DNA of 64,000 nt from Blepharisma stoltei ATCC 30299 (GCA_965603825.1 CBFDEM010000002.1:372001-436000), one strand, 5' to 3'. Shown: positions 27,144 through 63,295, numbered from the stretch's first letter. Numbers and translations: made by a program. Notes: a model not told the origin generated them from the letters alone.

Positions 27144-28995
27144 AATTGCTTTATTTAGATTGCAAATGTGAAAAATCTCTTTTGGAATTTGTTGGCGATT
27201 TATTTGCTCATAATCTTATAAGATTTCCATCCTAAAACTTCAGACTTTCAATTTCTCATTAAAAATCTGTGCTTCCTCTTTTCGAATATTTGAGCAGAGC
27301 ATTAATTGAGCAATAATCTATCTACCCATTATACTCAATGTACTCCATGTGAATTCATTAAGATTTATTAAAATAATCTATAGAAGTAGGAATTAGAATC
27401 CAGCCTTAGATATGTTTAATCGTTCTTGAGAGCTTAATATAATAAATTATTACTTCAAAGTAGCCGATAGAAAAGTATGTTTGTGACTTGATGAATATTG
27501 AAGCTCAGCTCCCTCATAGAGTAATCAGAAAAGCTATATCATTTATAATTCAAATTCATATACTAATATACAACTCTGTAACATATAGGAACACTTCTTT
27601 TTATAAATTCAATGAATTCCCTTTGCGACAGATTAGCTTTTTCCAAAACTAGTAGCACAAATTTCGAATGGAGCTTTGCTACTATAAATTTTATGTTTTT
27701 CAGAAAACGAATAAAATAATTTCAAAAGAGTCAAGTCAACTCTATGATAAATAGTTTTACCTCAAGACTTTGAATTATATGACTCAGGTTAAATTTTTAA
27801 AGCAGTAATTTTTAGGATCAACTTATCATCTGAACTATTTCTATTATAAATTAACATTTATAATAAATATAATTGTGCAATGATAATTTCAGGACTTTTT
27901 TTATTTCTTACGATAGCCAACTTCTTTATTTTGAAAAAATATTTTAAAAAAGTGAAAATTCGGCAAAGCTCCTATCAATTTTTAATCATGTTTTTAACGA
28001 ATTACTTTTCCTTACTATATTTTGCAACCATTGATGAATGACTGACTAGCTCTTTTAAAGCCTGTGGCATGGAAGAATTAATTCCAAGTATACTTATTTC
28101 AATTACAAGCTGATTTACTTCAGCAAACCCTTCTTTCAGCAGCCAAAGTTTTTCACATCCCTATTATATCCTCTTTATTGCATATAACTTTGGCTTTTCA
28201 CTCGCTGTCTATGCAACGAAAAAGCTTGGCAATCACAATTTGGCAATTTTATTATGACTTTCACTGTGCGTCATAAGCCTTCTTGCAGATTTATCTTGCA
28301 TTACTGACTCATTATTGATATCTAATTCTTTATTTTGGCTTATTTTTGCATTTTTAAAATACATTGTAGCTTCATTAGCCATCCAGTTCTTTCATTTTTA
28401 TAATTTTACAATTATGTATCAATGGCATGAATTTGGGAAAAATTTTGATGTAAAATCAAAAACTAGCAAAAATGCTGAAATAAACTTTCTTAAACTAATT
28501 GAAATTTTAATTGTCTTGCTATCTTTCTTTATTGCAACTAGCTGGACACTTGAAACTGTAGAAACTATGTGACCAAATATTTGGATTTTCAGAGAGGGCT
28601 ATTATTTTTTAGTATCAAGAAGTATAGCGAGGCTCCTCAAAGATTTTGACGGCAAAATATGAGACCGAAGAGAATGTTGGCTCTCATTTTGCAATCAAAT
28701 AGGTATATATACATACCTAAAGATTTTATGCTTGATTTATACTTTGAAGATTAATTAAATTAGTCTCTAAATATTAATTATTATTAAATCTTTTAATGTC
28801 TTCAGTCCAAAAGCCCCCAAAAATAGCTTCCATCTATAACTAGATGCTCGAAAAATTTATACCTAATTGAGCAAGGCTAACATAGCAATTAATGGAACTT
28901 TAAAGCAACGGGAAAAAATATATCTAATTGAATTGCTAACAATAACGAATTTGAACTGTATTAATATATTGAAATAATGAATTTTTTAAGATTTA
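27144..28995 (+). repeat. Segmental duplication A, copy 1
   Basis: Near-identical to 29401-31254 over about 1.85 kb, including non-coding DNA. Confidence 0.93.
27880..28758 (+). CDS. Multipass membrane protein, array member 1 (292 aa)
   Basis: Intact with TGA=Trp; hydrophobic N-terminus, FLTNYFSL and WIFREGLLF motifs. Confidence 0.78.
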
Positions 28996-29400
28996 GTCCC
29001 CTCTTCATAATTCTTGAAATTAAATTTTCAATACTTGAAAATAATTCTTAAATATTAAATAGTTAAAATTAATCAATATAATTAATAACTCTTTCATTAA
29101 ATTTATAAATAAAATTACATTATTCTTTCAAATATTCAGATTTTTAAATTTTTTATATGTAATTTTGCTATATTTTGCTGTTAAACAGGCGCTTATACCT
29201 ATATAAAGGTTTTAAGATGTGCGTATGCTTTATTTATTCTTCCATAATTTCTAATAGATAATAATCGTGCCATAAAATATAATCATACGAGAGCAAGCAG
29301 GATGATTATTACAATTTTTGTAGTTTATGTTGCGATTTTAACCAATCGCTTTTTCAATTTGCATATCATTGACACATCATAATAAAATGGCTACGCACAG
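28992..29400 (+). pseudogene. Duplicated upstream region and truncated 5' end of the member-4 type gene
   Basis: Similar to 32977-33390; reads MIITIFVVYVAILTNRFFNLHIIDTS-stop. Confidence 0.7.
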
Positions 29401-31254
29401 AATTGCGTTTATTTAGATTGCAAATGTGAGAAATCTCTTTTGGAGCTTGTTGGTATTTTATATGCTCATAATCTTATAAGATTTCCATCCTAAAACTTCA
29501 GACTTTCAATTTCTCATTAAAAATCTGTGCTTCCTCTTTTCAAATATTTGAGCAGAGCATTAATTGAGCAATAATCTATCTACCCATTATACTCAATATA
29601 CTCCATGTAAATTCATTAAGATTTATTAAAATAATCTATAGAAGTAGGAATTAGAATCCAGCCTTAGATCTGTTTAATGCTCTTGACAGGCTTAATATAA
29701 TAAATTATTACTTCAAAGTAGCCGATAGAAAAGTATGTTTGTGACTTGATGAATATTGAAGCTCAGCTCTCTCATAGAGTAATCAGAAAAGTTATTTTTT
29801 TTATAATTCAAATTCATACACTAATATACAACTCTGTAATATATAGGAAAACTTCTTTTTATAAATTCAATGAATTCCCTTTGCGACAGATTAGCTTTTT
29901 CCAAAACTAGTAGCACAAATTTCGAATGGAGCTTTGCTACTATAAATTTTATGTTTTTCAGAAAACGAATAAAATAATTTCAAAAGAGTCAAGTCAACTC
30001 TATGATAAATAGTTTTACCTCAAGACTTTGAATTATAATGACTCAGGTTAAATTTTTAAAGCAGTAATTTTTAAAATCAAATCATCATCTGAACTATTTC
30101 TATTATAAATTAACATTTATAATAAATATAATTGTGCAATGATAATTTCAGGACTTTTTTTGCTTCTTACGATAGCCAACTTCTTTATTTTGAAAACATA
30201 TTTTGAAAAAGTGAAAATTCGGCAAAGCTCCTATCAACTTTTAATCATGTTTTTAACAAATTACTTTTCCTTACTATATTTTGCAACCATTGATGAATGA
30301 CTGACTAGCTCTTTTAAAGCCTGTGGCATAGAAGAATTAATTCCAAGTATACTTATTTCAATTACAAGCTGATTTACTTCAGCAAACCCTTCTTTCAGCA
30401 GCCAACGCTTTTCACATCCCTATTATATCCTCTTTATTGCATACAACTTTTGCTCACCACTCGTTGCCTATGCAACGAAAAAACTTGGCAATCCCAATTT
30501 GGCAATTTTATTATGATTTTTACTATGCGTCATAAGCCTTCTTGCAGATTTATCATGCATTATTGACTCATTATTGATATATAATTTTTTATTTTTGCTT
30601 ATTTTTGCACTTTTAAAATACATTGTAGCTTCATTAGCCATCAAGTTCTTTCATATTTATAATTTTACAATTATGTATCAATGGCATGGATTTGGGAAAA
30701 ATTTTGATGCAAAATCAAAAACTAGCAAAAATGCTGAAATAAACTTTCTTAAACTAATTGAAATTTTAATTGTCTTGCTATCTTTCTTTATTGCAACTAG
30801 CTGGACACTTGAAACTGTAGAAACTATGTGACCAAATATTTGGATTTTCAGAGAGGGCTATTATTTTTTAGTATCAAGAAGTATAGCGAGGCTCCTCAAA
30901 GATTTTGACGGCAAAATATGAGACCGAAGAGAATGTTGGCTCTCATTTTGCAATCAAATAGGTGTATATACATACCTAAAGATTTTATGCTTGATTTATA
31001 CTTTGAAGATTAATTAAATTAGTCTCTAAATATTAATTATTATTAAATCTTTTAATATCTTCAGTGCAAAAGCCCCCAAAAATAGCTTCCATCTATAACT
31101 AGATGCTCGCAAAATTTATACCTTATTGAGCTAGGCTAACATAGCAATTAATGGAACTTTAAAGCAACGGGAAAAAATATATCTAATTGAATTGCTAACA
31201 ATAACGAATTTGAACTGCATTAATATATTGAAATAATGAATTTTTTAAGATTTA
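29401..31254 (+). repeat. Segmental duplication A, copy 2
   Basis: Near-identical to 27144-28995 (offset about 2258). Confidence 0.93.
30139..31017 (+). CDS. Multipass membrane protein, array member 2 (recent duplicate of member 1)
   Basis: Same length and frame integrity as member 1. Confidence 0.78.
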
Positions 31255-31338
31255 CTCTATTGGTTTAAAATCAAGCTATTTTATTCAAAATAACTAACAT
31301 AAAATTCAATATATGCATTTACTAATAAATAAAGATCC

Positions 31339-32352
31339 ATGATAATTATTGCTCTAATCGTAGTTCTGCTTATTTTTATAGACAGATATTTACTTCGAAA
31401 ATACGTAACAGGACAACCTATAAACTCTACTTGAGTTTTCGCTATCTTATTCCCTATTAATTATTTGCCTATATCAACTTCCAAGATTCTTGATGACTAC
31501 TTGTCAGAAATGATAATTGCACTTCTTGAGTTCTTAAGTGATATTTTTTTCCCAGAAGAATGAAGCAAAGGTTTGAAAAGCATAAACTACTGGCTAGTTT
31601 TTGGATTATTGGTTTTATTCTCTTTTTTAGCTCTACAGCTGCACACCATTTGATTCAATAAAGGAAGCACATATATAACTCAATCTGCCTCACGAGGAAT
31701 TTGCTGCAATTTAATTTGTTTACTACTCAATGATTATATTGGATATATTTATAAATTTTATTTGCTTCTACTTTTATTATGCCAAATTATCCAGCATTTC
31801 TTTAGGTTTAGAGATCCAATTCATTATTTGCAAACTTCATCTTTTTATCTACTTATAACAGCAGTTTATTCAACCATATGCCTGCTATCATTTTTTGAAA
31901 GGGACTTTCAAATTTCCAGTTTTATGATTTATATACTATTTTTAGCTATAAGATTAGGAGCGATGTTTTTCACTTTAATTTATTTTTTGTGCTTTTTTAT
32001 AACAAATATTGAACACCTTGTAGATTATTATAAGTGATTTGAAAATTATCGTTCTATTGGAATATGCTCAATAGAAGAAATTTTAATGAAGTTATTACCT
32101 CCATATGGCTATGTATTAATTTTTATTGCTGCTTTCTATCTTGCATTAGAATTTTTTAATTCCAGTTATCAGCAAATTTGGCTATTTTACGAATGCTTGT
32201 TTTTAGTGGGAGTTGGCCATTTTTCAGTTATTATAAATTTGCCATATCCCAATGATGAAGTTGATAGAGTATTTTTTTCAGACTTAGCAGGATGCTATAT
32301 CCAATTTTTAGCAATAAGATATTTATTAAACTATTTTCAATATCCATTTTAA
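31339..32352 (+). CDS. Multipass membrane protein, array member 3 (337 aa)
   Basis: Track ORFs 31762 and 32086 are in frame with ATG 31339; FPINYLP and SDLAGCYIQFLAIR motifs. Confidence 0.78.
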
Positions 32353-32529
32353 TCTGGATTTATAATTTAAAGCAATCCTTGCAAGCTACTTTAAGATTAT
32401 TATTATTATTATTATCTGAGTTTTTTTATTTTAAATCTAATTTATGAGTAAATTAACAGCATGCAATTTGCTTAAAAGATATCGTCTATTAATAGGTATT
32501 GTCTAAAGTGAAGGGAAAAAAAATTATGA

Positions 32530-32920
32530 AGAGCCTATTGCTGTCGTGCTATCTATCTTAAGATTATCTTGCTTTTTATTGAAGAAAATGATAGAGAAAT
32601 ACATTCTTAAATCACTTATCAAGGTTCCTTATATTTATTACTCATTAATTATCAAAATCTTTAAATTACCTAAAGATAAATCTTTTAAAATGGCATTCCT
32701 GAAGTTTGGTAGATTATTGGAAGCTCTTTAAATAGGATTTCTTATACCTGTGATACTAAAATGGATAATTAACTGAGTTGAATACTTTAAATTGCAGAAA
32801 CATGACCAAGAATTGGGATGCTGAGAGAAGGCTATTATTTTTTACTATTAAATTCCTTAGTAAACATTTAAGAAATATTGACTGCAATATGGATGATTCC
32901 TCTTTAATCTATTATTAAAT
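32530..32920 (+). pseudogene. Decayed remnant of a member-1 type gene
   Basis: tgaccaagaattgggatgctgagagaaggctattattt resembles member 1 tgaccaaatatttggattttcagagagggctattattt; contains stops and frameshifts. Confidence 0.5.
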
Positions 32921-33297
32921 TTTACATAAATTGTATTCGTAAACATAAATTTATAATTTAAATTGTTAAAAAGACTTAGTCCCTCTTCATAATTCTTGAA
33001 ATTAAATCTTTAATAATTTAAAATAATTCTTAAATAATAAATAGTTCAAATTAATCAATATAATTGCTAAATATTCAATAATTCTTTCATTAAATTTATA
33101 AATTAAATTAGGTTCATCTTTTCAAATATTTGGATTTTTAAATCCGAAAGAATTTGCTATGTAATTTTGATATACTTTGCAGTAAACATGCGCTTATACC
33201 TATATAAAGGTTTTAAGACGTGCGTATGCTTTATTTATTTTTCCATAATTTCTAATAGATATAATCGTGACATAAAATATAATCATACGAGACAAAG

Positions 33298-34251
33298 ATG
33301 ATTATTACAGTTCTGATAATTTGTGTTACGATTTCAACCCATTACTTTTTGAATTTGAATATCATTGACCCTACCAAATATAGAAAGACTAAAATGATTC
33401 TCACTTTATGATATTTCGCATCTTATTTTAGGGCTTCTTATGCCCAAAAGCTGAATCAAATAATATTAGATATCAGAGACAATTTTATTGATAATTTAGA
33501 TAAAGCAGTATTTACTTTTAGCTGCTTTGATGATTACTTTTTATGTGACTTTCAACACTATTACTTATCTAATTGCTTTTGCTTTACACTATTTTGAATT
33601 AACTATTTTTATAATCCACGCCAATATCCAAATCTCTCATTTTCATTAGGAATGATTAATATATTTATATCAATTTATGCAAGAAATTCTTTATCATTTT
33701 ATCAATCAGCCTTTGTTTTTCTTAGCGTTTCTTTCTTCTCATTCTGCACAATCTGGAGAAGTTCAGTTTCGGGACAATCTTTTATTTATATTTGCATATT
33801 TCTCTTAGATATTATGGCAGAAGCTATTGCTTTTAGTTCTAATGAGTTGAATAGAGTAAAATTACTTATCAATACTATTAGCTTTATTATGGATCTTTGG
33901 GGAATTTCTGTGATATTAATTTTCGTTTTAATTTGCTTTTGTATGCACTTGGATAGCTTTGATGAATATATTAGACTTTTAGATAAGAAAAAAGACAATG
34001 AGTTTTATTTTAAGGTAGCTGAAGTATATACTTTTCTACTTGCTTTAAATTTAGAAGCTATTTTGGTTGCAAATTTATGATCTAACTCCTGACTAATAAA
34101 AAATTTAGTGTTAATTTTTATTTCAGCTAGTCTAGGCTCTTTACTTGTTTTTCCAGACGATGATAATAGAAAATTTATGATATTTGCCTCAAATGTTATT
34201 GCGACATATTTTCAAGTATATTCTATCAAGACTTTATGGAATTTAATATAA
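33298..34251 (+). CDS. Multipass membrane protein, array member 4 (317 aa)
   Basis: Open with TGA=Trp; C-terminal LGSLLVFPDD...SNVIATYFQVYSIK motif. Confidence 0.75.
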
Positions 34252-34336
34252 TTTACGAACACATTGCTGTGATAATAAGGCATAAAGTATATTAACTATG
34301 GCTTTAATATAATAAATAATTTCTGTTTTGGAAATC

Positions 34337-35340
34337 ATGATATTTATTATCCTTATTGCCTTTTTACTCTTTTGCTTTAACTTTCACTTTATTGAAAGAT
34401 ATTTTGACCAAAAACCTTCAAAGTGTACTTGAATGCTTGCAACTCTATTTCCTATTAACTATTTTCCTATATCTATTTCAAAGATAATAGATAACTACCT
34501 TTCAGAAATTATTATAGCTGCTCTTGAGTCAAAAATTGAAATATTTTTTCCACAAGAATGAATAATAACTCTGAAGAGCTTAAATTATTGGCTAATTTTT
34601 GGATTATTGTGCTTATGCATTGCAACTTACAAGCATTTTCGAACTATATGAAGCACAGATGGCATTTATCATACATATAGATCTGCTCTAATAGGAATAT
34701 GCTGTAATTTTGTTTGCCTTGCCTTTGCAGACTATATTAAAGATGATTGCTATTTCTTTATTGCCTTTCTATCACTATACCTTGTAAGCCAGCATTTCTA
34801 TAGCTTTCGAAATCTTATTTACCAATATAAGATTTCATCTTCTCTATACCTATTAGTAGCTATTACAAATTTAATTGTGGTTGTGTTATTGCTTTTTGGG
34901 CTAAAATTTCACATATCAGAGCTTATGATTGATTTATTTTTTTTTCTTTTCAAATTATTAATGCTGGTGGTAACTGTAGTTTATTTTATAATGTTTTTTA
35001 TATCTAACATTGATCACATTTTTGATTGCTCTTTATGATTTCAAAGTTATAAAATAACAACTAAATTTGATATTGGAGAAGTTTTGGCAAAAATATCAGT
35101 ACCATATGGATATATAGCCATCTACACTATTGCATTCTTCTCTATTTTAGATTTTTTTAACTCATGCTATTTGAAATATTGACTGTTTAATGAAGTTTTA
35201 TATTTTATAGCTATATTTCAGTTCTTTTGAATGCACCAGAAACTAAAGATAGAGGAGATAGAGTATTTTTCTCAGATTTAGCAGGCTGCTATACTCAATT
35301 TATAATATGCAGAGCGATAATAATTTCGATTTCTATATAG
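34337..35340 (+). pseudogene. Array member 5 (paralog of member 3) with a frameshift near 35210
   Basis: Open to about 35210; the conserved DRVFFSDLAGCYTQF end lies in a shifted frame, consistent with a ~7-nt deletion relative to paralogs. Confidence 0.68.
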
Positions 35341-35588: not shown

Positions 35589-35890
35589 GTGCTATTTAAT
35601 CATAATTCATATTCAATTAAGTATAAAATTGATGAAACAAATACAAGATTTCTACTGCCGTATGGATATCCCTTAGTTTGCATTGTTGCTTCTTACTCAA
35701 ATTTAGATTTATTTAATAAAAGATATCAATACAATATACTATTTAATGAAATTTTATATTTAATAGAAGTTGGCTATATTTCTGAACTTTTAAACTATCA
35801 AGAAACAAAAAGGGCATAAAATATTTTTTTCTAATCCACAGAATGTTATATTCAGTTTGGGTAATAAGATACTTAATTATCTAGACTAAG
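35589..35890 (+). pseudogene. 3' remnant of a member-3/5 type gene
   Basis: LLPYGYPL and LFNEILYLIEVGYIS match members 3 and 5; no 5' half. Confidence 0.6.
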
Positions 35891-36052
35891 TAGCTAATAT
35901 ATAAATATATATATATTTATTGACCTCAGAATTACCATTACTCTTAAAATAAAAAAAATTGTCAGAAAACGCATAATAAATGACATCTTTAATGGTTCCT
36001 GTTTAATTCACAAACAGATATGCAAGTAAAATTACTAGTGATGTAAAAAAAT

Positions 36053-36943
36053 ATGAGTAAGCTTCTAATTCTGATAATCATTTCCGTGGCAACACTTGCG
36101 ATTCTACCCGGAATGACATCTCCATATAATCGTGTGGCACAGCCTCAATTGAAAGAAAATGGTAATGGATGTTGGAATGAAAATAGGTTGGGTGTGAGAG
36201 ATGAATTATATAACAGAAAATATTATAGAAACTGAATTGATGAGAATTGCGAATATGATGAAGAAGATAAGTGTGATAAATATGATGAAAGTGATGAGTA
36301 TGACGAAAGAAGTGAGTGCGATGAAAGAAATGAATGCGGAGATGAGATAAACGAATGTGGAGATGAGAAATACGAATGTGATGATAAGAGAAATGAATGC
36401 AGAGATGAGAGAAACGAATGCGGAGATGAGAGAAACGAATGTGATGATAAAAGAAACGAATGTGATGATAAAAGAAACGAATGCGGAGATGAAATAAACA
36501 AATGCGGAGATGAGAGAAACGAATGCGGAGATGAGAGAAACGAATATGATGATAAGCGAAACGAATGTGATGATAAAAGAAACGAATATGATGATAAGAG
36601 AAACGAATGCGGAGACGATTGAAGCGAATGTGGAGATGAGAAAAACGAATATGATGATAAGAGAAACGAATGCGGATATGAGAGAAACGAATGTGATGAT
36701 AAGAGAAACGAATGCGGAGATGAGAGAAGTGAGTGTGGAGATGAGAGAAACGAATATGATGATAAGAGAAACGGATATGATGATAAGAGAAATGAATGTG
36801 GAGATGAGAGAAACGAATATGATGATAAGAGAAACGGATGCGGAGATGGGAGAAACGAATATGATGATAAGAGAAACGAATGCGGAGATGAGAGAAGCGA
36901 TGAGCATACAATCATTTTCAAATCCATAAAATCTAATAAATAA
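36053..36943 (+). CDS. Secreted Cys/Asp/Glu/Arg-rich heptad-repeat protein (296 aa)
   Basis: Signal peptide MSKLLILIIISVATLA; reads through TGA 36233-36235 into roughly 28 repeats of NE(C/Y)(G/D)D(E/K)R; TAA at 36941-36943. Confidence 0.8.
36300..36900 (+). repeat. Coding 21-nt minisatellite (gaaacgaatgcggagatgaga / gaaacgaatatgatgataaga)
   Basis: Directly visible tandem 21-mers in two main variants. Confidence 0.93.
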
Positions 36944-37594: not shown

Positions 37595-38017
37595 CTTTGG
37601 CTCATTTCCGTAACTACATTTATTAAATATTTAGTTGATAACTTATAATATTTAAGTTTTTTATAAACTTCTAAATTTGTTCCATTAAAATTTTTAAAGA
37701 TTTTCATATTAGAATTAGAATCTTATCTTATCAAGTTTATTATGATTTGATTCTTTTTTGGCATTTTCTGACTTTAGTTTTTGAAGTTCTTCTGTTGAAT
37801 TCTTAAATTACCTTTAAGACAAATTGCAAACTCAAACCAGCTGATAATTTTTGTAGAATAGCATTGAAGAGTAATTTAATTTAAATGAATCATCCATAGT
37901 TATCTCTACCATTATTACCGATTTATGCATATTTTGAAATTTAATTAACTTTATTTGAATGAATTTTAATTAAGGTAATTAATAATCATTATAACTCACT
38001 TTATTTCCTGTAAAAAT

Positions 38018-40216
38018 ATGTCACATAATTATAACTCGTCCAGCAGGAAAAGACTTCTGCAAAATCAATTTGAATGAACAGAAGGATACTTCATTGAAAG
38101 TTTAATTTCATATTTACAAGAAGGTTGCTCGATAGACAAAACTGAATTAAATTCTGCTTATCAAAAAATTTTGGAATCAGCCAACAATCCAAGAGATGTG
38201 CATAAACTCTATAATTCCTACATAAATTCTATTCAAAATTACACAGTTACATGCTTAAAATCTGAACTTTTGGATTTATCTGGAGAAGCTCTTTTATCAT
38301 CTCTTACCAAGAGACTAAATTTTCATGATAAGCTTACCGACTTAACCAGAAAAATTTTTAACCACCCTCAGGAGTATGACAATGAAAAATGACTTTTCAG
38401 CTTCTGTCAGAAAGCACTAAATTTTCTGCCATATAAACTCGGAAAAGCTCTTATTCAGCATTTAAAATATGAAAGAGAAGGTTCAGTTATTGACCAAAAT
38501 ATTACGAAGCAATATTTTGATTTTTTATGAAAATTACTTATTGGAATGGGTGATGATGTAAATGGAAAATTTTGATGAAAAGAAAAGCAAGCTTTAAAAT
38601 ATTACGAATTTTGTTTCGAAAATGATTTTTTAAAAGAATCTCAACAGTTCTATGCGTCAAAAATAATTGAACTGATTAAAAATTTGCCATATTATGATTA
38701 TTTGATAGCTATTGGAGAGTTTCTTAACGAAGAGGTAGAAAGGGCTGATAATTATTTAAAGCCTACCACAAAAAATAAACTTTTGAGTAGTTTTTTTAGA
38801 GAATTTCAGTTTTGAAATCCTCAGCAGCTTTCTGATATGGAAAAAAACTTATATGAAGATATGCTTAATGTCTCAAAAATTGAATCTTTTAAAGCAATAT
38901 TCAATATTTTAAAGTATTCAGAACCTGATATTAGAAATCTGACAAAAATGCTTTACGACTATATAGAAAACAAAGGAAATTTAATTTTAAATAATGAGCA
39001 GCTTAAGCTTGACTGGATTGAGTACATAAAAGCTTCAATTTTATTTAAATGTGAAATTGATTTATTAATTAAAGCTACGTTTGACTGTTTTCTGCCATAC
39101 AAGAAATGATGGGATAGCTTTTTCAGAAAGTTTATTAATGGAGTCTCGAATTCTGCAGCTTATTGTGCATGCTACTGTGACTGGCAAATGAGGATTGGTC
39201 TTAGACCCACTTCTGAAGTTGAAACTGATCAAATTTTGGACACTATAGTAAATATAATTTCTTTTTTGGATGACTGTGATGTTTTCATACACCATTATAC
39301 ATGATATTTGTCTAAAAGATTGTTAGAGGAGACAAGCTCAAGCGAATATGCCGAAAAATCGATGATTTATAAATTCAAGGAGAGATTTGGAGAAAAGTAT
39401 GCCAATAAAATGCTGATAATGTATAATGATATTTCTATATCTGAAAAACTTATGGAGGATTTTAAAGAGTCAGGAAGAGGTAGCATGAGAGGGATTGAAA
39501 TGGAAGTTAAGATTTTAAAAAATGGATGCTGGCCGGAAAATCCTCCTGAATTCTGCTCAATTCCTAGAGAATTAATATCTTGCACTGAATTATTCGAAAG
39601 TTTTTATCTAGAAAAATATCATAAGCGAAAACTCACTTGGACAATGGCATCAGGGACTATAGATTTGTCAACAATTTTTACACCGAATAATTATATTTGC
39701 ATTGTAAATCCTTATCAAGCTAGCTTATTATTAATGTTTAACCATAAAAATTCCTTCACAGTTAAAGAAATCATTGAAAATTCCAAGCTACGAGAGTCAA
39801 CTTTAAAAGCCAATTTAATAAAATTTTTTAATCCAAAATGCCAACTTTTAAAGAAAGAAAGCAAAGGGAAAAAACTGAATAACGATGAGAAAATAGAAAT
39901 TAACGAGGATTTTCAGTCAAAAAATATGAAAATAAACTATCTTCCAAAGATGATTTCTAGGAGTGAATCAATTCAAAAGAAAGAAGAAACTGCGATTTTA
40001 AATGAAAGAAGAAACATTATTGATTCAATTTTAATTAAAATAGCAAAAAAATCGAAAATAATAAAGCATCAAGATATGATAGAAGAAGTGCTACAAGAAA
40101 TGCAAAATTTTAAGCCAAGAGTGCCAATGATAAATGATCAAATAGAAAGTCTAATCAACAGAGAGTTCTTAATGAGAAGTGAAAATGATAATACAGTTTA
40201 TCATTACATTCCTTAA
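38018..40216 (+). CDS. Divergent cullin (~732 aa)
   Basis: Single frame with TGA=Trp; YLSKRLL, KMLIMYNDI, FESFYLEKYHKRKLTW, neddylation region DSILIKIAKKSK, IESLINREFLMR and VYHYIP. Confidence 0.9.
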
Positions 40217-43148: not shown

Positions 43149-43205
43149 TGCATAGAGAAAATCCAAACTTTCTTTCATTTTTTTCTAAATTAATAAAATA
43201 GCTGA

Positions 43206-51969: not shown

Positions 51970-52027
51970 ATTAAATTTATTAATAAAATCATTAATTTTG
52001 GATTTCGATTTATATAATAAATAAAAT

Positions 52028-55000
52028 ATGAAGATTTTATGATGGCTTCATCTATTACAAATCATTCCGAGCTATTATGCTTTAAGAAAATGTACTGATG
52101 GTCATTTCTGTAGAGACAGAAAAATGCCTTACATTTTGTTATTATTATTTTTAGCGGATTACATCCCGCTTCTATTTTCTGAAGCGTTTTATGATGGTTT
52201 TTTTCGATTAGTCACTTTTGGATGAGATTATGAGTATTTTTCCAAAGAATTTTTATGACTAAGCGCATCTATCCTTACCTTTACAAGGCAACACATATCT
52301 GTATATAGCTCATACAGTTTCTGAATATTTGGAGTTATATCAATTCTACTATCATCCAATCTCACAAATAATTTGAATTATAATTGACTATCCTTACCAG
52401 GGTTATTTAATTCATTATCCTTACTCTTTTATTATTCTATTTCAGGCTCTTTAGAATATTTCTTATATTATTTTATTTGCTTCTCAATTTTTATTATTTG
52501 AGGATTTAAAATTAGATATTGAATCACAGAATTAAACCCACTCTTTTATTTTTACAATATTTCGATGTTTGCTGGAATTTTGCTTGCTATAAAAAATGCA
52601 TTAATCCCTGATATTGATTTAGCGACCTGTATTGCGTGATAAGTATAAAATAGTCAGTTAGCGACCCATTCTCCAGTGATGGGGCTCTTGTAATCGTTAA
52701 GATAAAATCCTAAAAGAATTAATCTTTAGTGTGCTTTTATTCATTGCAATTAATTCTAATTTTTTGTTTTCGTGCTTTTAAGTAAGTAAATGAAAGAATG
52801 TAATTTTTATATCAATAAGCTTTTCAAGGGTTGAATCAGCCTGAAGTGACTTTTTATTTTTGCAGATGTGGAGCAAAAAGCAGAAGCAAACTAGTCTCAG
52901 AGCCGCGAAGGATGAGGAACTCCAAGTCCTGGATTTTGGCAGAGACGGTTACTGCTACGGCTTTGGAGCTCCCGTCAACGTATTACCAAAAATTGAAGAC
53001 ACAGGCTGTCATGGGAAAACATTGAAATTTTATTTATCAAAATTTGTGCTAAGAAGAGGAGAAGAAGCGAAGAGAAGTTTATACAGCTCCTTTATCATTG
53101 CTTTAGAGGCAAACACGGGAGATGGAGAGGTCTTGAGAATCCTCAAATTGCTGTCAGGAGATGCAGTGGTCACCTTCGGGGAAGACATGGCGTGAAAGGA
53201 CCTGAAGGACAGAGGGAAAATAGTAATACAGCATGAAGGCAGAAAGCAAACAATTCCAGTAGGACCAGTCTTTGAAGGAGGAGAGATCAACTATGTGAGG
53301 TATAAAATGCAGGTAACTATTCCTACGAGAATTGAGCTAGGGTAAATATTGGAAGAGCTGGGCAAGGTGTGCAAGGTTGTGGAGATAGTTGCGGACAACG
53401 TAATCGCATCAGAGGGAGAGATCTACAGTGTTCACTTCAGCACCAACTCAAGGTACGCCATATAAGGGGAATTCGGGTGACTGGACAGAGCACTCGATCT
53501 AGGTGATGAAATTACTCTAAGAGGGAAAAGAATATGGATCAACCATGCTGCCTCGCTATATTGCGGGATATGTCAGCAACTGGGCCACAGCGATCGGGGT
53601 TCATGAGAGAATTGCAGCCAAAAGGGAAGAAAGTACTAAGAGGGGCAAACTGGTAAAGGAGAAGAGAGAAGAAGAGAGAAGAAGAGGTATGCTGGCGAAG
53701 GCAGAAATCAAGAAAAATCGAATGCAGACAGAGGACACTGATAAGCTAAGTAGTTTAGCCTACGTAGGACTAAATGGAGGTTCGGAAGGCAAAGAGCTGA
53801 GTGGAACGAGCGGGGGCGGAGAAAGTAAGGAAGCTGGAGACCCTACCACGAAGAGTAACTCGACAATTGTTCCATGCAAAAACTCAGGAGCGCAAAAAGA
53901 AGAACAAGAAGAACTAAAGAGAAAACCTGAAGTGGGAGAAAGAAATTACCAGCCCAGAGTGAAAAGGATAAAAGAAAAAGCACAAAAGAGACTAAACCCA
54001 TAGCTCATATTAACATTAACGGGGTCAGGAAAAAGAGACAGCAAATAGACAAATTTTTGGAAGAAATAGCACCAGAAAGAATTCAAGGCCGAATTGAAAA
54101 GAATAAAGCTTAGAGTGTGGAAGGAAAGAAGGGTAGAGCAAGCCATTGTGAGTGCGAGGGATATGTGAGAAATAGCTAGGAGAATAAAACGATCCATGAG
54201 GAATAAGCCTGCAAGATTCACAAGAAATGAAGAAACTGCAGTAGTAGACTGATGGAGACGGCAATATGACGATAAAGGACAAACCTGGAAAGCAGAAACT
54301 GAGCCGAAGCCTCCTACGCTAGAGGAAACTATAGGAGCAATCAGATCCCTAAGCCTCTTGGCTAGATGGGGTTCAATCGGAGCTGGTCAAATATGGAGGA
54401 GAGGTGCTAGAACAGAAGCTGTGGGAGATGGCCTCAAAAATATGAATGGAAAGACACATACCAAAAAATATGAAGAGCGCGATAGTAGTGTTAATCCCAA
54501 AAAAATTAGGATCTAAGTCACCTGAAGACTACAGACCGAAAAACTGCTAAATACAGCTTACAAAATATTGGATAAAATTATAGCTAATAGACTAACCAGA
54601 GAAATATCTGAGAAAAAGATAATGCATCCAGCGCAAGCCGGATTCATGGCTCAAATGGGGACAGCTGACCAAATTTATAGGATAGAAACCGTCATAGAGC
54701 ACTGCATGCTTGAAAAGAAAGGAGTAGTGTGTGCCTTCCTTGATATAAGCAGGCTTTCGACACAGTGAAGCATTCAGATCTGAACGAAGTATTGTCTGGG
54801 AGGGGAATAAGTGCAGATACTACCGCTGTACTGGAGCAATGTATGAGAACTGTGAAAGCAATATAATAATTAATGACAGGTTATCGGAACCGATCAAAAT
54901 AAGGAAAGGTGTTGGAAGGGAATATATTTTAGCCTGATACCGAACGAATTAGCATGGGCAATAAGCAATATGAATCTTGGCGTCACACTGAAGCCTGAGG

Positions 55001-57159
55001 CTGAGAAACTTGGTATACTATATACGCAGATGACATAGTACTCATAGCACATACTGGCACACAGTTGCAGCAGCTAGTTGGCATCTGTAGCAGCTGAGCT
55101 AACAGGTACTCCCTCAGAATTAATCAACAGAAATCATAGTGGTGGACTACTCACTGAAGCCCACCAGACTACAAGTAGTGACAGATGCAATGCAGCTGAA
55201 GCAAGCGACACACTTTAAATATCTGGGCAAGGTGATAGGAACATCAAGAAGTAAAACCGCTGGCACTAAGGCTACACTTGAACATGTTAAGTCGGCTAGC
55301 AGAGCAGTTAAAACACTATTAAAAGGATTGAATTGTCTTCCAGTAATAAAAAATCAGTTGCTGCTGAAGCATGTGTAACCACTGTTGCAACATATGTTGG
55401 AGAATGTTCACAACGGGCATGGGATGGTGCAGCATTGATATGCGCTAAAAATGAGAGGATGAGGCTGGCTAGACTACTACTGCATGCACCTGCAGGCACT
55501 GCAAGGGAAACGTCCCTGCTAGACATAGGATGGGTTACACTTGTCAACCAATTGAGGACACGACTGCTCAGATACAGAAAAAGAATTTATGACATGAATG
55601 ACCACCTGACAGTCCTTATGAGGGAACTGAACTCTCGCGAGCTATTGCCATGAGAGATGAGATGCTGGGAGACACTTGCACTAGTAGGCATGAGTAAATA
55701 CCAGGGAGAAGGCAAGCTGCAGGAGGTAGACAAAGTAGAGTGGAAGCAAAAGATCAAGGATGCTGTGAGACTGCTGAACTGAAGGGAATCGATGCATAGG
55801 CTGAAAGCTGAAACTGAAAAATCTACACGAATGTACAGGTCTCTCATGGTATGGATGGAATCTACAGATGTATCAACATTTGTCAAGATTAATTCATATA
55901 ATGGAGCTGCAATAGGAATGGTACATAGAATGAGAGCAGGCTTCAACTTCTGTAACGCTAATGCTAAATTAAGGCACTTGACACATGATGAAATGTGCAA
56001 TGAATGTAAGGTACCTGAAACTGAAGAGCATGTACTTACAGAATGCACAAGGTACGGCAGGTATAGACTTGAACTGCAGGAGCAACTTGATAATACAGGT
56101 ATAGCATGATCAGCACTTGGACTCATTCAGGTAATGCTTTATGGAGCAAAGTAAGAAGCTTATGTGAAGAAGCTATAGCTGGATGGAAGAGACGACATAA
56201 TACACATAGTGGATACTGCGGTGAAATGGTTTCACTTGAAGGTCCTTCAAGATGTGGGTGAAGAGTTCAAGCTGAAACTGTAGGCAAATTACAGGTGCAG
56301 CATGGTAGACAGTTAAGAATAACAGATTGATTAATTAAAAGCCCTTAAGGGCTGCAACGATGCATCTACCTAGGTGTGCTTGGTAGCCCTGCTTTCTATT
56401 GTGAAAGCTTTTAAGTTTTTTTTGGGATGACTCGTCAAATATCTTAAGGATACGAAGTGTCTCAAGCAAAGGGTCCCAAATGAAGTGATATCTAATTGAG
56501 CTAATTAATTTTAGGCCTAAGCTGAAAATTGAGGATCCGCCAAAGTCTATATGACCCGGACTATTTGGAATGTTTAACAACAAAAAGGGTTTTAGGCCAG
56601 AGCTCAAGTTGCCTTAATAAAGTACTCCTCACAGTGAACGCCACATAAAGCATGGTGTATATAATGCGGGGCTATAAATGCACATCACTAATCTTATCTA
56701 ATCTAAATCTAATCTACCTGCATTGTATGGATTTTATGTGCAGGAATAGCAATGGCAGTCCCAGCCATGATTTTCATTTATTTTTGCATAAGTTTCGGTT
56801 CAGTTTTTGAACTACTACGTTCTTTCGATCAAGAATTCTGTAGCAACAATGAAAATGATAATAATTATTTGCATAACCCTGAGTATGTTTTTTGTATTTT
56901 CCAGAGTTATTTTCACATTTTTTTCTTTGCATTTGCAATGATATTGACTGCAAGCATATTTGAAGAAATACTTGGGAGTTGAAATAGAATGCTTGTAGAA
57001 TTGCTTTATGTAACAGCTGCTGCTATTGTAGGCAATGCATTGTTAAGCCCAAGTTTAAGCTATGACAGCTTCAATATACAGATGAATATTTTAGGAATAT
57101 ATGCCCAATTTTGGTTTTTAAGAATCCTTGCAAATTTTTTAAATAGCATTTTAACCTAG
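52028..57159 (+). pseudogene. Array member 12, split by a non-LTR retrotransposon (coding parts 52028-52639 and 56716-57159)
   Basis: Both halves align with the intact paralog 58387-59439 across the DLATCIVWIL junction. Confidence 0.85.
52640..56715 (+). mobile_element. Degenerate non-LTR retrotransposon (LINE): gag-like ORF1, RT ORF2, 3' (TAATC)n-like tail
   Basis: ORF1 knuckle CGICQQLGHSDRG. RT motifs VVLIPKK..DYRP, YKILDKIIANRL, QAGF, AFLDI, YADDIVL and FKYLG; C-terminal CNECKVPETEEHVLTEC. Many frameshifts and higher GC. Imperfect 15-bp TSD at 52625-52639 / 56716-56730. Confidence 0.92.
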
Positions 57160-57397: not shown

Positions 57398-58323
57398 AAG
57401 GGTTTGAACGGGCATCTGCAGCATTTTATTGCATTTTCAATTTCACTCAGGGTAAATCACTTAAAAATTTATGGAAAAAATTATTCCAAACTTTAGGATC
57501 AGCATCATAAAATATTATGGACCATATAACTCTATTTATCCCACCTTCATTGGCTTTCGGCCTTGCTAGGTACTCGTAAATTTTTCCTTGTATTGATTTT
57601 AAGTGCTTCATTAATGTTGGATACAGACTTATTTCATTGCTTTTGAGAAATCTTACAACATAGCCTTCTTTTGAAAAATTTTTATCAAGCATTTCTAAAA
57701 TTTCATCAAATAAGCTTTGAATGCTTTGTGGGTAATCTGTTGTAGAAATGTTAAGTGAGCCTTCATCGTCAAAATCTTCGATATCTAAATTTTCCAATAA
57801 AGTCAATAATTCAATCCCTTAATGAGAAGAGAAATTTCTTTTGGATTTAGTTTTGTGCTAAAATCTTCAATGATTTTTGTGACATATTCTTCTAATTCAT
57901 AGATGCAGTAGCCGTGTGAGTGAAGAGAATTATAAAGATAGCAAACTTGCTCAAGACTTAAAGCGTCCTCTAAAACAAACTCAGTAACTTTTGTGTCTAA
58001 ACGCATAATGCTTTCCATAGGTAGAGCTGCATTTGTGCGGTTTAGTCAATAGAAATAATCAACAACTCCTTGAGGAGTTAAATTTGCAACAGCATCTTGT
58101 ATTTTTTCTGATAAGCTTGTGAATTCCTTTTTATCTTCTGCTGATAAATTATCCCACTTCACTTTATCAGAAATTACGCGAAGACTTTGTGCTATCTGTG
58201 ATGCTGAAGAATTTTTTGCCTTTGTGAATTTATATTTGGCCAGTCTAGAATTGTCTTCGGCCTGATATAATATTTTTGTGAAAAGTTCCTGCTTAGGCGA
58301 AAAACGAAGCTTTTCAATCACAT
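57398..58323 (-). pseudogene. Truncated, internally deleted duplicate of the RAP-like gene 5' part
   Basis: Matches 50732-51969 with deletions and frameshifts. Confidence 0.88.
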
Positions 58324-58386
58324 ATTGAATTTATAAATAAATCATTAATTTTGGATTTCGATTTATATATCTATAATAAATAAAAT

Positions 58387-59439
58387 ATGAAGATTTTATG
58401 ATGGCTTCATCTATTACAAATCATTCCGAGTTATTATGCTACAAAGAAATGCTTTGATTGTTCCTTTGGAGACAGAAAAATACCTTGCATTTTATCATTA
58501 GTATTTTTAGCAGATTACATCCCGCTTCTATTTTCTGAAGCTTTGTATGATGGCTTTTATTGGTTAGTCACTTTTAGACAAGATTGTGAGTATTTTTCCA
58601 AAGAAGATTTATGACTAAGCGCATCTATCCTTACCTTTATAAGGCAGCACGTATCTGTATATAGCTCATACAGTTTTTGAATATTTGGAATTGTATCAAT
58701 TCTACTATCATCCAATCTTATAAATAATTTGAACTATTATTCACTATACTTGCCAGGGCTATTTAATTCGTTATTTTTGCTCTTTTATTATTCTGTTTCA
58801 GGCACTTTAGAATATATCTTATATTATTTTATTTGTTTCTCAATTTTTATTATTTGAGGATTTAAAATTAGATATTGAAATACAGAATTAAACCCACCCT
58901 TTTATTTTTACAATACTTCGATGCTTGCTGGAACTTTGCTTGCTATAAAAAATGCATTAATCCCTGATATCGATTTAGCTACCTGCATTGTATGGATTTT
59001 AAGTGCAGGAATAGCAATAACAGTCCCAGCTATAATTTTCATTTATTTTTGCATAAGTTTCGGTTCAGCTTTTGAGATAATACGCTCTTCCAATCAAGAA
59101 TTCTGTAACAACAATGAAAACGATAATAATTATTTGCATAATCATAAGTATGTGCTTTGAATTTTTCAGAGTTATTTTCAAATTTTTTTCTTTGCAATTG
59201 CAATGATATTGACTGCAACTATATTTGAAGAAATATTTGGTAGTTGAAATAGAATGCTTATAGAATTATTTTATTTAACAGCTGCTGCTACTATAGGTAA
59301 TGCATTGCTATACCCGAATTTAAATTCAAATCGATACGACGATGAAAGCTTCAGTGTGCCGATAAATATTTCAGGAATATATGCCCAGTTTTGGTTTTTA
59401 AGAATCCTTGCAAATTTTTTTAATAGCCTTTGAACCTAG
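58387..59439 (+). CDS. Multipass membrane protein, array member 13 (350 aa), intact paralog of member 12
   Basis: Open with TGA=Trp; FLADYIPLLFSE, IGNALLYP and GIYAQFWFLR motifs. Confidence 0.8.
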
Positions 59440-60583: not shown

Positions 60584-61579
60584 ATGCTGTACTTATGGAT
60601 TATTCATCATTATATTACCTTTGTTCCTTTCCTTTACAGCATGATAAATAAAATTCCAAAGCCTAGAAATAACCGCATACAGCTATATTTTACAATTTTG
60701 TTTTACTTAATTAGTTATTGCTTGGAATATTTTTCTCACAAACTGGATAAAATATTTCCCAGCATTACAATCACAAATTGCTTTGTTTTAAAAGATTGCT
60801 CACAGTGGAATGTCCCTACATATATGTTCTGGATATTATATTTTCTTAAAGTTTGCCATCCTTTAATTGATTTTTGTAAGAAGATTCATGGACCTCTCCC
60901 AATTAATCGGCAAACTTTGATCTTATCTTTGGCGATAGTGCTAATAGACTCATCACTATTTATTTGCTATATATTGTCAGAAAATAAATTGAACTGCACC
61001 TTAATTTTTCTGATAACTACTTTATCTTGAAGCTTATTGATTTTTAAGATATATAAATATATGTGAAACAAGCCAGGTGAAATTTCATGAGAGATTACTT
61101 ATGCTTTACTCTATATTTTAGGCTCTTTAATGCTGATTAGCTCATTCGCATTTGAAATTTTGACACAATTATTTTTAATTGAACTAAAGCTATCATTTTT
61201 GTGATGCCTCTTTGTATTTGCTTCTGTAGCAGATACCATTTTGTTTTTTAGACTCAGAAAAGTTAAGGAAAAGTGAGATCAACGATTTATCAAACGTTTT
61301 AGTCTACACCAAAGATTTCTTCGCTTGGCTGAAGTATATTTCTTTTCCATTTTTTCTATTTGTGGATTGTGAGCTTCTAACTGACTTTATATAGAATTGT
61401 TTGAATCAGAAATGTGGATATTTAATGAAGGAGTTTATTTCGGAATTTCGATGACCATAGCAATTTTGCTTGATTTTCAGTATTATCATATTAATACAAT
61501 ACATGCTATTGGAATTTATATTTTGATACGTTTTGGATATTGCAGGCTAATTCATTTTATAATAACTATTTGTAGCTAA
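60584..61579 (+). CDS. Multipass membrane protein, array member 14 (331 aa, divergent)
   Basis: Track ORFs 60584 and 61397 share a frame; WIFNEGVYF and AIGIYILIR motifs. Confidence 0.72.
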
Positions 61580-62100
61580 GATATTTATATGTCCTCTGAG
61601 ACAAGCTCAAAGGAGAATTAACTATGAAAGATTTCTTTATTTTTAATTCATAAGAGATTGTTTAGAGAACTTTTTAAATCTGTTAATTCCTCTAATCGAA
61701 AGAATTAAGTAAGGCAATATTTTGTCGAAAATATAAAATCCTCAAGTAGGTAAGACATAGTTTAAAATTAGCTTTTATATGTAAATTATATAATTAGATA
61801 TATGCTTAAAATTAATTCTGAATAATTCTGGAATTTAGAAATTAAAATTTGATGTGTGATTCTATTTTTTTTCAATACCCTTTACTAAAGAGGAAACAGA
61901 GAAATGATTAAGTAGAATGCCCTTTAGTGAAGAGGGCAACAAACCATAATAGATATTAAATTTCCATATTAGATATATCAATAGTATTGAAATAGGATAA
62001 GATAATTTGAATTGGAAACAATTTTTGGTAAAACTGTAATACAAATTTACGTCATTAAATTAATTATTAAAATGAGCATCTATTAGTTTTAAAAAAGTAA

Positions 62101-63295
62101 ATGATAATTATATGGATAGCGCACATCTTCTTGTATTTTCTTTACTATTGCTACTTTCACACTTTATATGACTTTATACCAAATTACTGAAATATTTCTT
62201 GCATCTGAATCCTTTTTCTTTTCGGCTATTTGTGGTTATACCTTTCCAAAATTTTATCTCAAAGCCTCTTAAGCATTAATTTCAGTTTGATCTCTTTACT
62301 GCCCTTCTCCTCCGTCAGAAAAGACATTTTTTGATCGCTTATCAAAGGAGTTAAATCTTTTCTATATTAAAAATTATACTATAAATCAGAATATTTTTGT
62401 TATAAAATTTTATAATATTTTACTCGCTAATTTTCTCAAATTTTATTAATGATTTTGCTTAATTTGGAGGTAGTTTGCAACTTCAATAAAAGGTATTCAA
62501 TCAAGCGATTATTTATTTTTTTATATTCAACCTTGATTTTCTTTATCAAATATTCTATTAATTTGCTTTTGCTTAACTATGTATTTATCGTGATATAAAG
62601 CAAACCACAGGCTATCAGGGAAAATGATTGCAAGATTTTTTATAGTTGGAATTCTAAATATATGCATATTTTTCTGATATAAATCTATCTCAGTAGAGTA
62701 TTGTGTTTGAATGTGGATGGCTTCAACTATTATTTATCTAATGAATTTTTTAAGATTAATTTATTTTTCAGGATCAATGCATGATATCATGTTTTTAATC
62801 GTTCTATCTTATACGATATTATTTATCATTGGGACTTTAGCATTTTTAGGGCAAATTTTCAATTGATCCTTTTTAAGCTCTTTGATAAGCTTGCTTGTGT
62901 TTGAAATGAAAGTGTCGCTGTCGATAGTATTTTTATTATTCTCTAGTGAAGTGACAACAAGTATTAGATCAATGTCCTATAATATATTCAAATCTTGGAA
63001 AGCAAGGCAAGATAATGGCCCTAAATATATCGAAAAAGCTCTTTTATTCCTGTGACTATATGCAATAGCAATATTGAACATTTACTTATTGTGGAAAATG
63101 AATCAGTTGTTTCTCGAACTGTTTGAGGAAAAAACTTGAATACTTAAGGAAGGGTTTTATTTAGAACTTGCTACGACTTTTGAAATATGACTTTGTTATC
63201 CTGAGACAATTGAAGAGAGTAATTATAATAGTGTATTTGGAATTTATACTTTTATGAGGCTTGGTGCTCTGCTTATTAGTCAAAGTCCTTTTTAA
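62101..63295 (+). pseudogene. Array member 15, frameshifted with in-frame stops in its 5' third
   Basis: MIIIWIAHIF start; frameshift near 62280 and stops at 62447 and 62471; open 62474-63295 ending WILKEGFYL...FGIYTFMRLG. Confidence 0.62.

Follow-up and report, generated by a model that had tools for sequence, protein, structure and literature searches.

A tandem array of orphan multipass membrane-protein genes in the ciliate Blepharisma stoltei

A 35-kb array of paralogous genes read with UGA as tryptophan

In the 64,000-nucleotide stretch of Blepharisma stoltei DNA analysed here (the window), positions 27880-63295 hold a plus-strand array of ~35 kb that, when UGA is read as Trp, contains 15 loci and one remnant of a single paralogous family. 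This array is probably the main locus of a small orphan family of intronless, polytopic membrane proteins with 10-11 predicted helices, born by duplication. The preliminary description, made from the sequence alone, had proposed both the array and its reading with UGA=Trp, and the host is indeed a heterotrich ciliate using that code, as the database matches carry the species name Blepharisma stoltei. Family members are 290-365 aa long and 24-92% identical to each other. About ten of the loci are intact and five are damaged: one is frameshifted, one has lost its ATG, one is truncated at the N-terminus, one is interrupted by a decayed LINE and one is a short divergent copy.

The family genes are real coding sequences. 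With TGA taken as stop, 18 ORFs of at least 200 aa are found (16.8 kb), and with TGA as sense the number rises to 36 (41.7 kb), most of which are plus-strand. Within 27880-63295, 17 plus-strand ORFs reach at least 250 codons, a length attained in none of 200 shuffles (longest shuffled ORF: 216 codons). In 12 genes, 63 of the 84 in-frame TGA codons align to a Trp of a paralog, and 46 to a TGG codon. Ten database proteins are letter-for-letter equal to ORFs translated with table 4, and the public annotation is therefore likewise intronless, as first described; in that annotation the family members are called as unnamed proteins.

All 15 loci are connected by BLASTP, tblastn and HMM searches. Scores for the core loci range from E 1e-89 to 1e-137, the pair at 27880 and 30139 joins the family at E about 1e-11, and two weak links (62474 at E 4e-4 and 60584 at E 0.014) share a C-terminal W-I-x-x-E-G-x-Y...Y. 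Every landmark previously listed for the family was recovered in the alignments, namely the hydrophobic start, N-Y-x-P, the charged loop, W-x-L-K-E, L-x-Y-P-x-D and S-N...Y-x-Q...R. We define the family signature as N-Y-x-P in helix 2, W-x-[LIF]-[KR]-E, L-x-[YF]-P-x-D and a C-terminal [SN]-N-x4-Y-x-Q-x4-[RK], motifs that core members carry and divergent ones carry in part.

Organization of the array

All family loci lie on the plus strand. The first is an intact gene of 292 aa from a divergent short subfamily (27880-28758, HMM E 8.5e-12), the older unit of a 2,259-bp tandem duplication whose flanks from 27150 are also 96-97% identical; its intact twin, again 292 aa, follows at 30139-31017 (BLASTP, HMM). 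Two intact genes with identical database proteins come next, one of 337 aa (P0009; 31339-32352, HMM E 3e-106) and one of 317 aa on a long tree branch (P0008; 33298-34251, HMM). In the copy at 34337-35301, three-frame translation located a 1-nt frameshift near 35225, after which the conserved C-terminal helix resumes in another frame, and the tblastn match extends beyond the stop codon; judged from these reading frames, the copy is probably a pseudogene, or else an assembly error. A dead remnant at 35604-35771 resembles residues 236-293 of this copy (tblastn E 1.5e-6, 41% identity).

The central part of the array contains intact genes of 365 aa (P0007; 40392-41489), 345 aa (43206-44243, HMM E 1.6e-134, also 345 aa in the public annotation), 338 aa (P0002; 44609-45625) and 344 aa (P0001, the protein modelled below; 46065-47099), of which P0007, P0002 and P0001 were each found by HMM and have identical database proteins. 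Among them, the copy at 42099-43148 is homologous over its full length (profile positions 4-343 matched) and has no ATG at the family start or upstream; the annotated protein begins with an internal Met at 42519 and has 209 aa (P0003). At 47811-48740, translation gives a 309-aa copy (P0004) without the first helix, preceded by stop codons, in which the profile match begins at position 17-21 and one TAG is included.

The LINE-split gene is represented by a 5' half (residues 1-203; 52028-52642) and a 3' half (residues 198-350; 56713-57159), which share 82% and 74% aa identity, respectively, with the intact 350-aa paralog at 58387-59439 (HMM, tblastn); at the nucleotide level the 3' half is 90% identical to the paralog (repeat family D8). 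Between the halves, also on the plus strand, lies a decayed non-LTR retrotransposon (52643-56712) with a GC content of about 0.40, an imperfect target-site duplication of ~14 nt and a TAATC-like 3' tail. Its RVT_1 matches, at window positions 54544-55148 in a whole-genome RVT_1 search, are interrupted by many stop codons, and related copies are present on other contigs. A junction comparison showed that the empty site of the insertion is preserved in the paralog at 58387.

The array ends with two divergent probable members. One is an intact ORF of 331 aa at 60584-61579, which is 27-33% identical by BLASTP to the loci at 27880, 30139 and 62579 and carries the shared W-I-F-N-E-G-x-Y and C-terminal Tyr. 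The other is N-terminally short (62474-63295; 238 aa counted from the first Met at 62579) and groups with the former in the tree at 95/89 support.

Three genes in the array are not members of the family. A plus-strand gene at 36047-36943 encodes a protein that is rich in Cys, Asp and Glu, starts hydrophobic at its N-terminus and is made up of ~25 repeats of 21 nt, and a cullin gene lies at 37979-40216 on the same strand (Pfam Cullin, Cullin_AB and Cullin_Nedd8 on the annotated product). On the minus strand, translation of 49165-52071 gives a 968-aa ORF of no assigned function, fragments of which are duplicated at 57429-58330, also on the minus strand, in copies 95-98% identical in nucleotides (repeat families D4 and D7).

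Birth, death and constraint of family copies

We searched the B. stoltei somatic genome (41.46 Mb in 64 contigs) and found about 25 family loci, so that the array is the main home of the family; the loci elsewhere lie on contigs C32 (two), C57, C60, C45, C47 (three), C50 and C18. Clades of the tree match physical blocks, with the C32 and C57 copies nested within window clades, and this agreement with physical order implies local tandem and segmental duplication. On these sequence relationships, the family arose by repeated duplication of both kinds, and a few copies were transferred to other contigs. The birth-and-death evolution proposed at the outset is borne out by a recent 2.26-kb tandem duplicate, one segmental duplicate (recent duplications being 96-97% identical in nucleotides), and five damaged copies and a remnant; the dead copies of the first description are thus real, as are its near-identical ones, the pair at 27880 and 30139 sharing 92% aa and 96-97% nt identity. 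The germline copy of the 40392 gene carries three IESs, and since IES positions compared among paralogs are not homologous, the duplications cannot be dated from them. If the family is functional, its dated duplicates, its frameshifted copy and the LINE-split copy, whose empty site survives in a paralog, make the array well suited to following gene birth and death in a genome that every sexual generation rebuilds from a germline laden with IESs.

Most copies are under moderate purifying selection, and others are being lost by frameshift, start-codon loss, truncation or LINE insertion. Alternatively, the array could consist largely of DNA that has no function and is decaying, in which duplicates of one gene drift and their hydrophobicity simply follows from AT-rich Phe, Ile and Leu codons. 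Five damaged loci out of 15 and one remnant are what such decay would leave, and the poor ESM Atlas models of two members point the same way, as does a dN/dS of 0.85 in the youngest pair (27880/30139), a value that rests on only 32 differences, too few to tell relaxed constraint from chance. However, a dN/dS near 1 throughout, which the preliminary description had named, together with absent transcripts, as the mark of junk, is not what we see: old pairs give 0.3-0.5 (0.31-0.46 listed), those with dS near 1 are still at 0.3-0.46, and the LINE-split copy against its paralog gives 0.37-0.51. Moreover, ten loci stay open for 290-365 codons, far past the shuffled maximum, identical polar residues are retained across members that are just 20-30% identical, and a deeper alignment raised the structural model to pLDDT 80 (see below), which together leave wholesale decay barely credible.

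Transcription bears on the same question. Four runs, taken to be RNA by guess only, provide low-depth Logan contigs that cover 57% of the genic bases in 42001-48000, 22% of the intergenic ones and nearly the full length of the 44609 gene; these contigs weakly suggest that the array is transcribed, although coverage from the candidate runs is low, as the decay alternative would have it.

The family is unmatched in sequence and domain databases

A profile of the C-terminal half, searched against 1.84 billion representative proteins, returned only nine matches, all from B. stoltei, and a set of 5.8 billion proteins added none from outside this species. Nothing was found with P0001 in metagenome contigs, nor with a 173-aa TGA-free piece aimed at transcriptome fragments of other species, and a search with the relative on C47 retrieved only itself. 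Pfam returned no family at E up to 1 for eight full-length members or at E up to 10 for the 33 alignment rows, and nothing for 10 + 10 pieces cut at TGA codons, while a profile search of PDB sequences yielded just two chance matches at E about 0.1. We found no description of the family in the literature. The family thus deserves its earlier label of unrecognised, being without a Pfam match, a PDB sequence match or a fold match above noise, and the lack of all these and of relatives makes it a genuine orphan. On present sequence data it appears to be known only from B. stoltei, which should be read as unmatched in these databases because other Blepharisma and heterotrichs may be poorly represented in them.

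Uncharacterised lineage-specific families are common in ciliates, and as it stands this is one of them, without a tie to a specific open question. If functional, it would be a compact, domain-free addition to the clustered membrane-protein expansions of the Blepharisma somatic genome. The supplement of the genome paper already describes clusters of duplicated transmembrane-protein genes, with pseudogenes in the course of erosion, in orthogroups with ANF_receptor (OG0000085, OG0000014), PAS (OG0000018, OG0000052) and malectin/LamG (OG0000019) domains (PMC9942806). Like the present array, these consist of co-oriented duplicates of moderate to high divergence with shortened, eroding copies and a few copies on other contigs; unlike it, they encode large proteins in which extracellular or sensor domains are set on a 7-9-helix domain, and have 80-140 members, against proteins of about 340 aa, all membrane and with no Pfam domain, at ~25 loci. 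Membership in these orthogroups was rejected, as a length of 290-365 aa leaves no room for the named domains and none of them is matched in Pfam. That supplement does not describe the present family, but the novelty is smaller than first assumed, as clustered, eroding transmembrane duplications were already known in this genome (PMC9942806).

Predicted structure and candidate functions

The AlphaFold model of P0001, built from 33 alignment rows of a single genome, many of them fragments, reached pLDDT 80 and pTM 0.55 with 11 helices, about ten of them hydrophobic; an earlier model from nine rows had pLDDT 65 and no fold matches. The topology prediction and the AlphaFold and Foldseek comparison proposed at the outset thus give 10-11 helices and no known fold above helical-bundle noise, although with a pTM of only 0.55 a known fold could be hidden. 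Querying the ESM Atlas by the features of P0001 produced no usable match. The positive-inside pattern suggests that the N-terminus is outside and the odd-numbered loops are cytoplasmic. Loop 2, which is long and acidic, would then face outwards and loop 7, which is conserved and highly charged, inwards; acidic loop 9 fits a simple ten-helix topology of this kind poorly. Conservation is highest in the C-terminal third and in the presumably cytoplasmic loop 7, and loops 1, 3 and 5 are the most variable.

This distribution, together with the tandem array and its turnover, would suit diversified surface receptors (chemosensory, pheromone-sensing or self/non-self), in which each paralog takes its own ligand through exposed loops and signals through conserved cytoplasmic parts; other clustered membrane-protein families of this genome do carry ligand-binding domains according to the genome paper's supplement (PMC9942806). 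For P0010, weak language-model feature leads (0.82-0.87) pointed to the 7TM families THH1/TOM1/TOM3, GPR137 and PRRT3, and structure leads (TM 0.41-0.45), obtained with the Atlas model of this protein, to TMEM87/GOST and bacterial 7TM sensor domains. However, feature scores in this range are obtained in a third of cases with shuffled proteins, the helices of the P0001 model number ten to eleven rather than seven, GPCR, GOST and insect chemoreceptor structures never rise above noise, and only about 25 loci exist. No region or loop reached a dN/dS above 1, and the long outer loop 2 is fairly conserved in the main clade (49% identity, dN/dS 0.31). We therefore regard such receptors as unlikely, and a combination of a novel fold, absent from solved and well-predicted structures, with diversified sensors for environmental or mating signals as highly improbable.

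Individual receptor classes were also considered. The THH1/TOM1/TOM3-GPR137-GOST proteins are alike in size, all-helical, eukaryotic and free of soluble domains, and are the nearest named clusters for P0010, but the better model of P0001 does not retrieve their folds and the P0010 scores are in the chance range (at most TM 0.45); membership was rejected given 11 model helices, no Pfam match on any member and no match to PF06454 in the whole genome. Solved GPCRs matched the model only at Foldseek E 2-4 and TM 0.14-0.16 and are missing from the VIA-align top lists. Animal chemoreceptor arrays (insect OR/GR, nematode and vertebrate) are tandem, turn over by birth and death with pseudogenes among intact genes, and conserve their C-terminal helices best, all of which the present family shares; yet its motif is S-N-x4-Y-x-Q-x4-R rather than the T-Y-x5-Q-F of GR-type proteins, and it shows no sequence or fold similarity to them and no sign of diversifying selection. 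Insect OR/GR-type 7TM channels were rejected on the lack of a Pfam match and their absence among the best 50 of 48,161 structure representatives and the best Foldseek matches, although at a model pTM of 0.55 a very distant relation may exist.

About ten helices, with conserved charged and polar residues inside them, would also be expected of a secondary transporter from one of the known ten-helix classes, for example a 5+5 carrier of the DMT/EamA type whose sequence has diverged past recognition, and EamA clusters are among the weak structural neighbours (TM 0.29-0.31) of the low-confidence Atlas models. Yet hhalign of the N- against the C-terminal half detected no internal repeat (probability 0.1%), and neither EamA nor any other transporter family was matched in Pfam even at E up to 10; DMT/EamA carriers were rejected on these grounds, and we consider a known class of this kind quite improbable.

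From its sequence, then, the family appears to fit no known receptor or transporter class. As a weak best guess, its proteins may serve in a surface or organelle membrane as carriers of small solutes, as channels or as sensors, with a buried polar cluster that would bind an ion or small polar ligand or let it pass. The conserved, buried Glu, Arg, Asn and Gln make this orphan protein of ten helices reasonable to pursue by structural and localisation studies. Conservation is strongest at polar residues in or beside the last helices: Glu295 (of W-x-L-K-E), Pro312 (of Y-P-x-D), Asn326, Tyr331, Gln333 and Arg338. Among 17 aligned members, E295 and Y331 are each retained in 16 and L309 in all 17, and further conserved residues are Asn129, Tyr43, Tyr181 and Tyr266.

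An array of paralogous membrane-protein genes under UGA = Trp

The published somatic (MAC) genome of Blepharisma stoltei reads UGA as tryptophan (PMC9942806), and once TGA was counted as sense, the window had 36 open reading frames (ORFs) of at least 200 aa instead of 18, and together these spanned 41.7 kb instead of 16.8 kb, with the gain mostly on the plus strand. Between 27880 and 63295, 17 plus-strand ORFs then reach 250 codons or more, a length that was attained in 0 of 200 shuffles (longest shuffled ORF: 216 codons). Across 12 aligned genes, 63 of the 84 in-frame TGA codons stand opposite a Trp of a paralog and 46 opposite a TGG codon. The public annotation holds the same intronless models, since ten B. 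stoltei database proteins (P0001–P0010) are exact table-4 ORFs; database entries identical to a window ORF, or to a paralog on another contig, are titled “unnamed protein product [Blepharisma stoltei]”.

A preliminary description of the sequence had proposed a tandem array of about 15 co-oriented genes, which our analysis confirmed as 15 plus-strand loci and one remnant, with all of the motifs listed there found in the family alignments. Intact plus-strand ORFs start at 27880, 30139, 31339, 33298, 40392, 43206, 44609, 46065, 58387, and 60584. Pairwise identity among members ranges from 24 to 92%. The core HMM scores core members at E 1e-89 to 1e-137 and the near-identical 27880/30139 pair at about 1e-11. 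Due to the weak core-HMM values for 60584 (E 0.014) and for the short, divergent plus-strand locus at 62474 (E 4e-4), these two are graded as probable, not proven, members on sequence grounds; both have W-I-x-x-E-G-x-Y and a C-terminal Tyr, as do the 27880 pair and a contig-47 relative.

The array is interrupted by non-members, namely a Cys-rich gene of 21-nt repeats (36047–36943, plus strand), a cullin gene (37979–40216), a 968-aa ORF that Pfam does not recognise (49165–52071, minus strand), and a decayed LINE (52643–56712). The protein encoded at 36047–36943 is hydrophobic at its N-terminus and continues as about 25 tandem repeats of 7 aa (21 nt), in which Cys, Asp, Glu, Arg, and Asn are abundant, and the long opposite-strand ORFs at this position are by-products of the 21-nt repeat. 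The array begins abruptly after 27150; upstream, positions 1–27000 contain ordinary eukaryotic genes in the same code, which by N-terminal sequence include a PP1-type phosphatase, an HSP70 fragment, GST-like proteins, and C2H2 zinc-finger proteins, as well as a gene for a 1,313-aa protein.

Duplication, decay, and constraint

The birth-and-death evolution envisaged in the preliminary description was borne out by a recent tandem duplicate, damaged copies, and a remnant. The tandem duplication, of 2,259 bp, spans 27150–31017 with 96–97% nucleotide identity that extends into the flanks. A second duplication (50789–52404 vs. 57454–58760, 88–98% identity) copied a family gene and, with it, the 5′ part of the adjoining 968-aa gene; two fragments of the 968-aa ORF recur at 57429–58330 (minus strand), 6.4–6.7 kb away and at 95–98% nucleotide identity, and this second copy is broken. 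Profile searches of the genome (41.46 Mb, 64 contigs) placed about 25 family loci genome-wide, 15 in the window and the others on contigs 32 (two), 57, 60, 45 (dead), 47 (three), 50 (dead), and 18. In a maximum-likelihood tree, in which many deeper forks are weak and long-branch attraction is possible, the family clades track physical blocks: 42099–47811, with both contig-32 copies nested within; 52028/58387 plus one contig-57 copy; 27880–34337; and 60584/62579 (62579 being the first Met of the 62474 locus) plus one contig-60 copy. Three divergent relatives form a second mini-array on contig 47 (37361–42572), where the intact one, P0010, has 346 aa and only one TGA, and the dead contig-50 copy lies at 138307–138897; the relatives on these two contigs have the motif form W-V-I-R-E-G-Y-Y, like the 27880, 60584, and 62474 copies.

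Damage takes several forms within the plus-strand loci. In the 34337 copy the frame shifts by 1 nt near 35225 and the conserved last helix resumes in another frame, while the 168-nt remnant at 35604–35771 belongs to the same subfamily. The 42099 copy shows homology from profile position 4 on without an ATG at the family start, and the public annotation starts it at an internal Met (209 aa). The 47811 copy is without its first helix and is preceded by stop codons. The sequences at 52028 and 56713 are two halves of a single family gene, between which lies a 4.07-kb element with a higher GC content, the LINE at 52643–56712. This element has an RVT_1 remnant with eight stop codons (54544–55148); its 3′ tail is TAATC-like, its target-site duplication (about 14 nt) is imperfect, and its empty site is visible in the paralog 58387. 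Relatives of this LINE occur on other contigs, the closest fragment being on contig 60 (292810–293544, 93–96% identity), and the genome paper notes an APE-type non-LTR family, with more than 30 copies, that it matches (PMC9942806).

Estimates of dN/dS (Nei-Gojobori, table 4) were 0.31–0.46 for old pairs, whose dS, at about 1, is saturated, 0.37–0.51 for the LINE-split copy against its paralog, and 0.85 for the youngest pair, which has 7.5 synonymous differences and 24.5 non-synonymous ones. Split by region, the main clade gave 0.23–0.82, with short loops 1 and 3 least constrained, loop 5 least conserved (13% identity), and no region above 1. These sequence comparisons indicate that the family is under real but relaxed constraint, and regional dN/dS in the main clade, a crude method, gave no evidence of diversifying selection.

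Clustered, duplicated genes of this kind are already known in B. stoltei, which reduces the novelty of the locus: the genome paper describes large clustered orthogroups with ANF_receptor, PAS, or malectin/LamG domains, including shortened, eroding copies, and suggests that many other genes may share such an origin (PMC9942806). In contrast to the orthogroups named in that account, the window family is small and domain-free, and it is not itself among them.

Search for relatives

That the family was unrecognised, as first described, held in Pfam, PDB sequence, Foldseek, and large protein-set searches, none of which gave a characterised match. A profile of the C-terminal half retrieved nine matches from 1.84 billion representative proteins, all from B. 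stoltei, and a word-indexed set of 5.8 billion proteins yielded nothing further with the full alignment, the contig-47 relative, or a 173-aa TGA-free piece as query. Metagenome contigs held no close relative, Pfam gave no match for pieces, full-length proteins, or all 33 alignment rows, and PDB sequences gave two chance matches only. Foldseek of the structural model against the PDB returned nothing below E 0.9, and the best TM among shapes in the ESM Atlas was 0.35. With P0010 as query, a feature search offered THH1/TOM1/TOM3, GPR137, PRRT3, and GOST-type 7TM proteins as weak leads at scores of 0.82–0.87, which shuffled proteins also attain a third of the time; with scores in the shuffled range and no match to PF06454 in the B. 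stoltei genome, a THH1/TOM1/TOM3-type 7TM identity is not supported. By every search made, the family is a true orphan.

Protein architecture

Hydropathy indicates about ten hydrophobic segments, and an AlphaFold model of P0001, the product of the 46065 gene, built from 33 rows (ten full-length proteins and, for the other paralogs, TGA-free pieces), has 11 helices (mean pLDDT 80, pTM 0.55), two of them long (203–251 and 255–287). Lys and Arg cluster in loops 1, 3, 5, and 7 and are scarce in even-numbered loops, a pattern that suggests an outside N-terminus and a cytoplasmic location for loop 7, which is charged and conserved; of the acidic loops 2 and 9, loop 9 fits this scheme poorly. No homology was detectable between the N and C halves. 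Residues conserved at 20–30% identity are Y43, N129, Y181, Y266, W291, E295, L309, P312, N326, Y331, Q333, and R338. Many membrane enzymes have conserved His or Asp pairs, and no pair of this kind was seen among the conserved family residues. We tentatively prefer to read the family, from the polar cluster of the last helices, as a membrane protein that may handle or sense small solutes or ions. The preliminary description had offered a receptor/recognition or transporter role, and its receptor reading is less likely and found no positive support.

Library coverage and a probable germline-inclusive copy

Parts of 42001–48000 are present as Logan contigs in four runs of one study, whose RNA nature is only a guess. 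In this interval about 57% of the bases within genes and 22% of those between genes lie under 26 short contigs (depth 3–8), as does nearly all of the 44609 gene, which is compatible with low-level transcription or with DNA in the libraries. One run differs from the other three by eight single letters at 44956–45575, within the 44609 gene; differences between alleles or strains, a paralog, or errors at depth 4–7 could each explain them.

The counterpart of 38917–53519 in assembly GCA_914767885.1 (CAJZBQ010000002.1:562296–583736), the public record with P0001, exceeds this part of the window in length. Owing to its 22 extra segments of 66–869 nt, with 2–14-nt overlaps at the junctions, this looks from sequence comparison like a germline-inclusive (MAC+IES) assembly. 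Presumed IESs occur at an overall density of about one per 0.66 kb, and 11 of them lie within family coding sequences, at sites that are non-homologous between paralogs.
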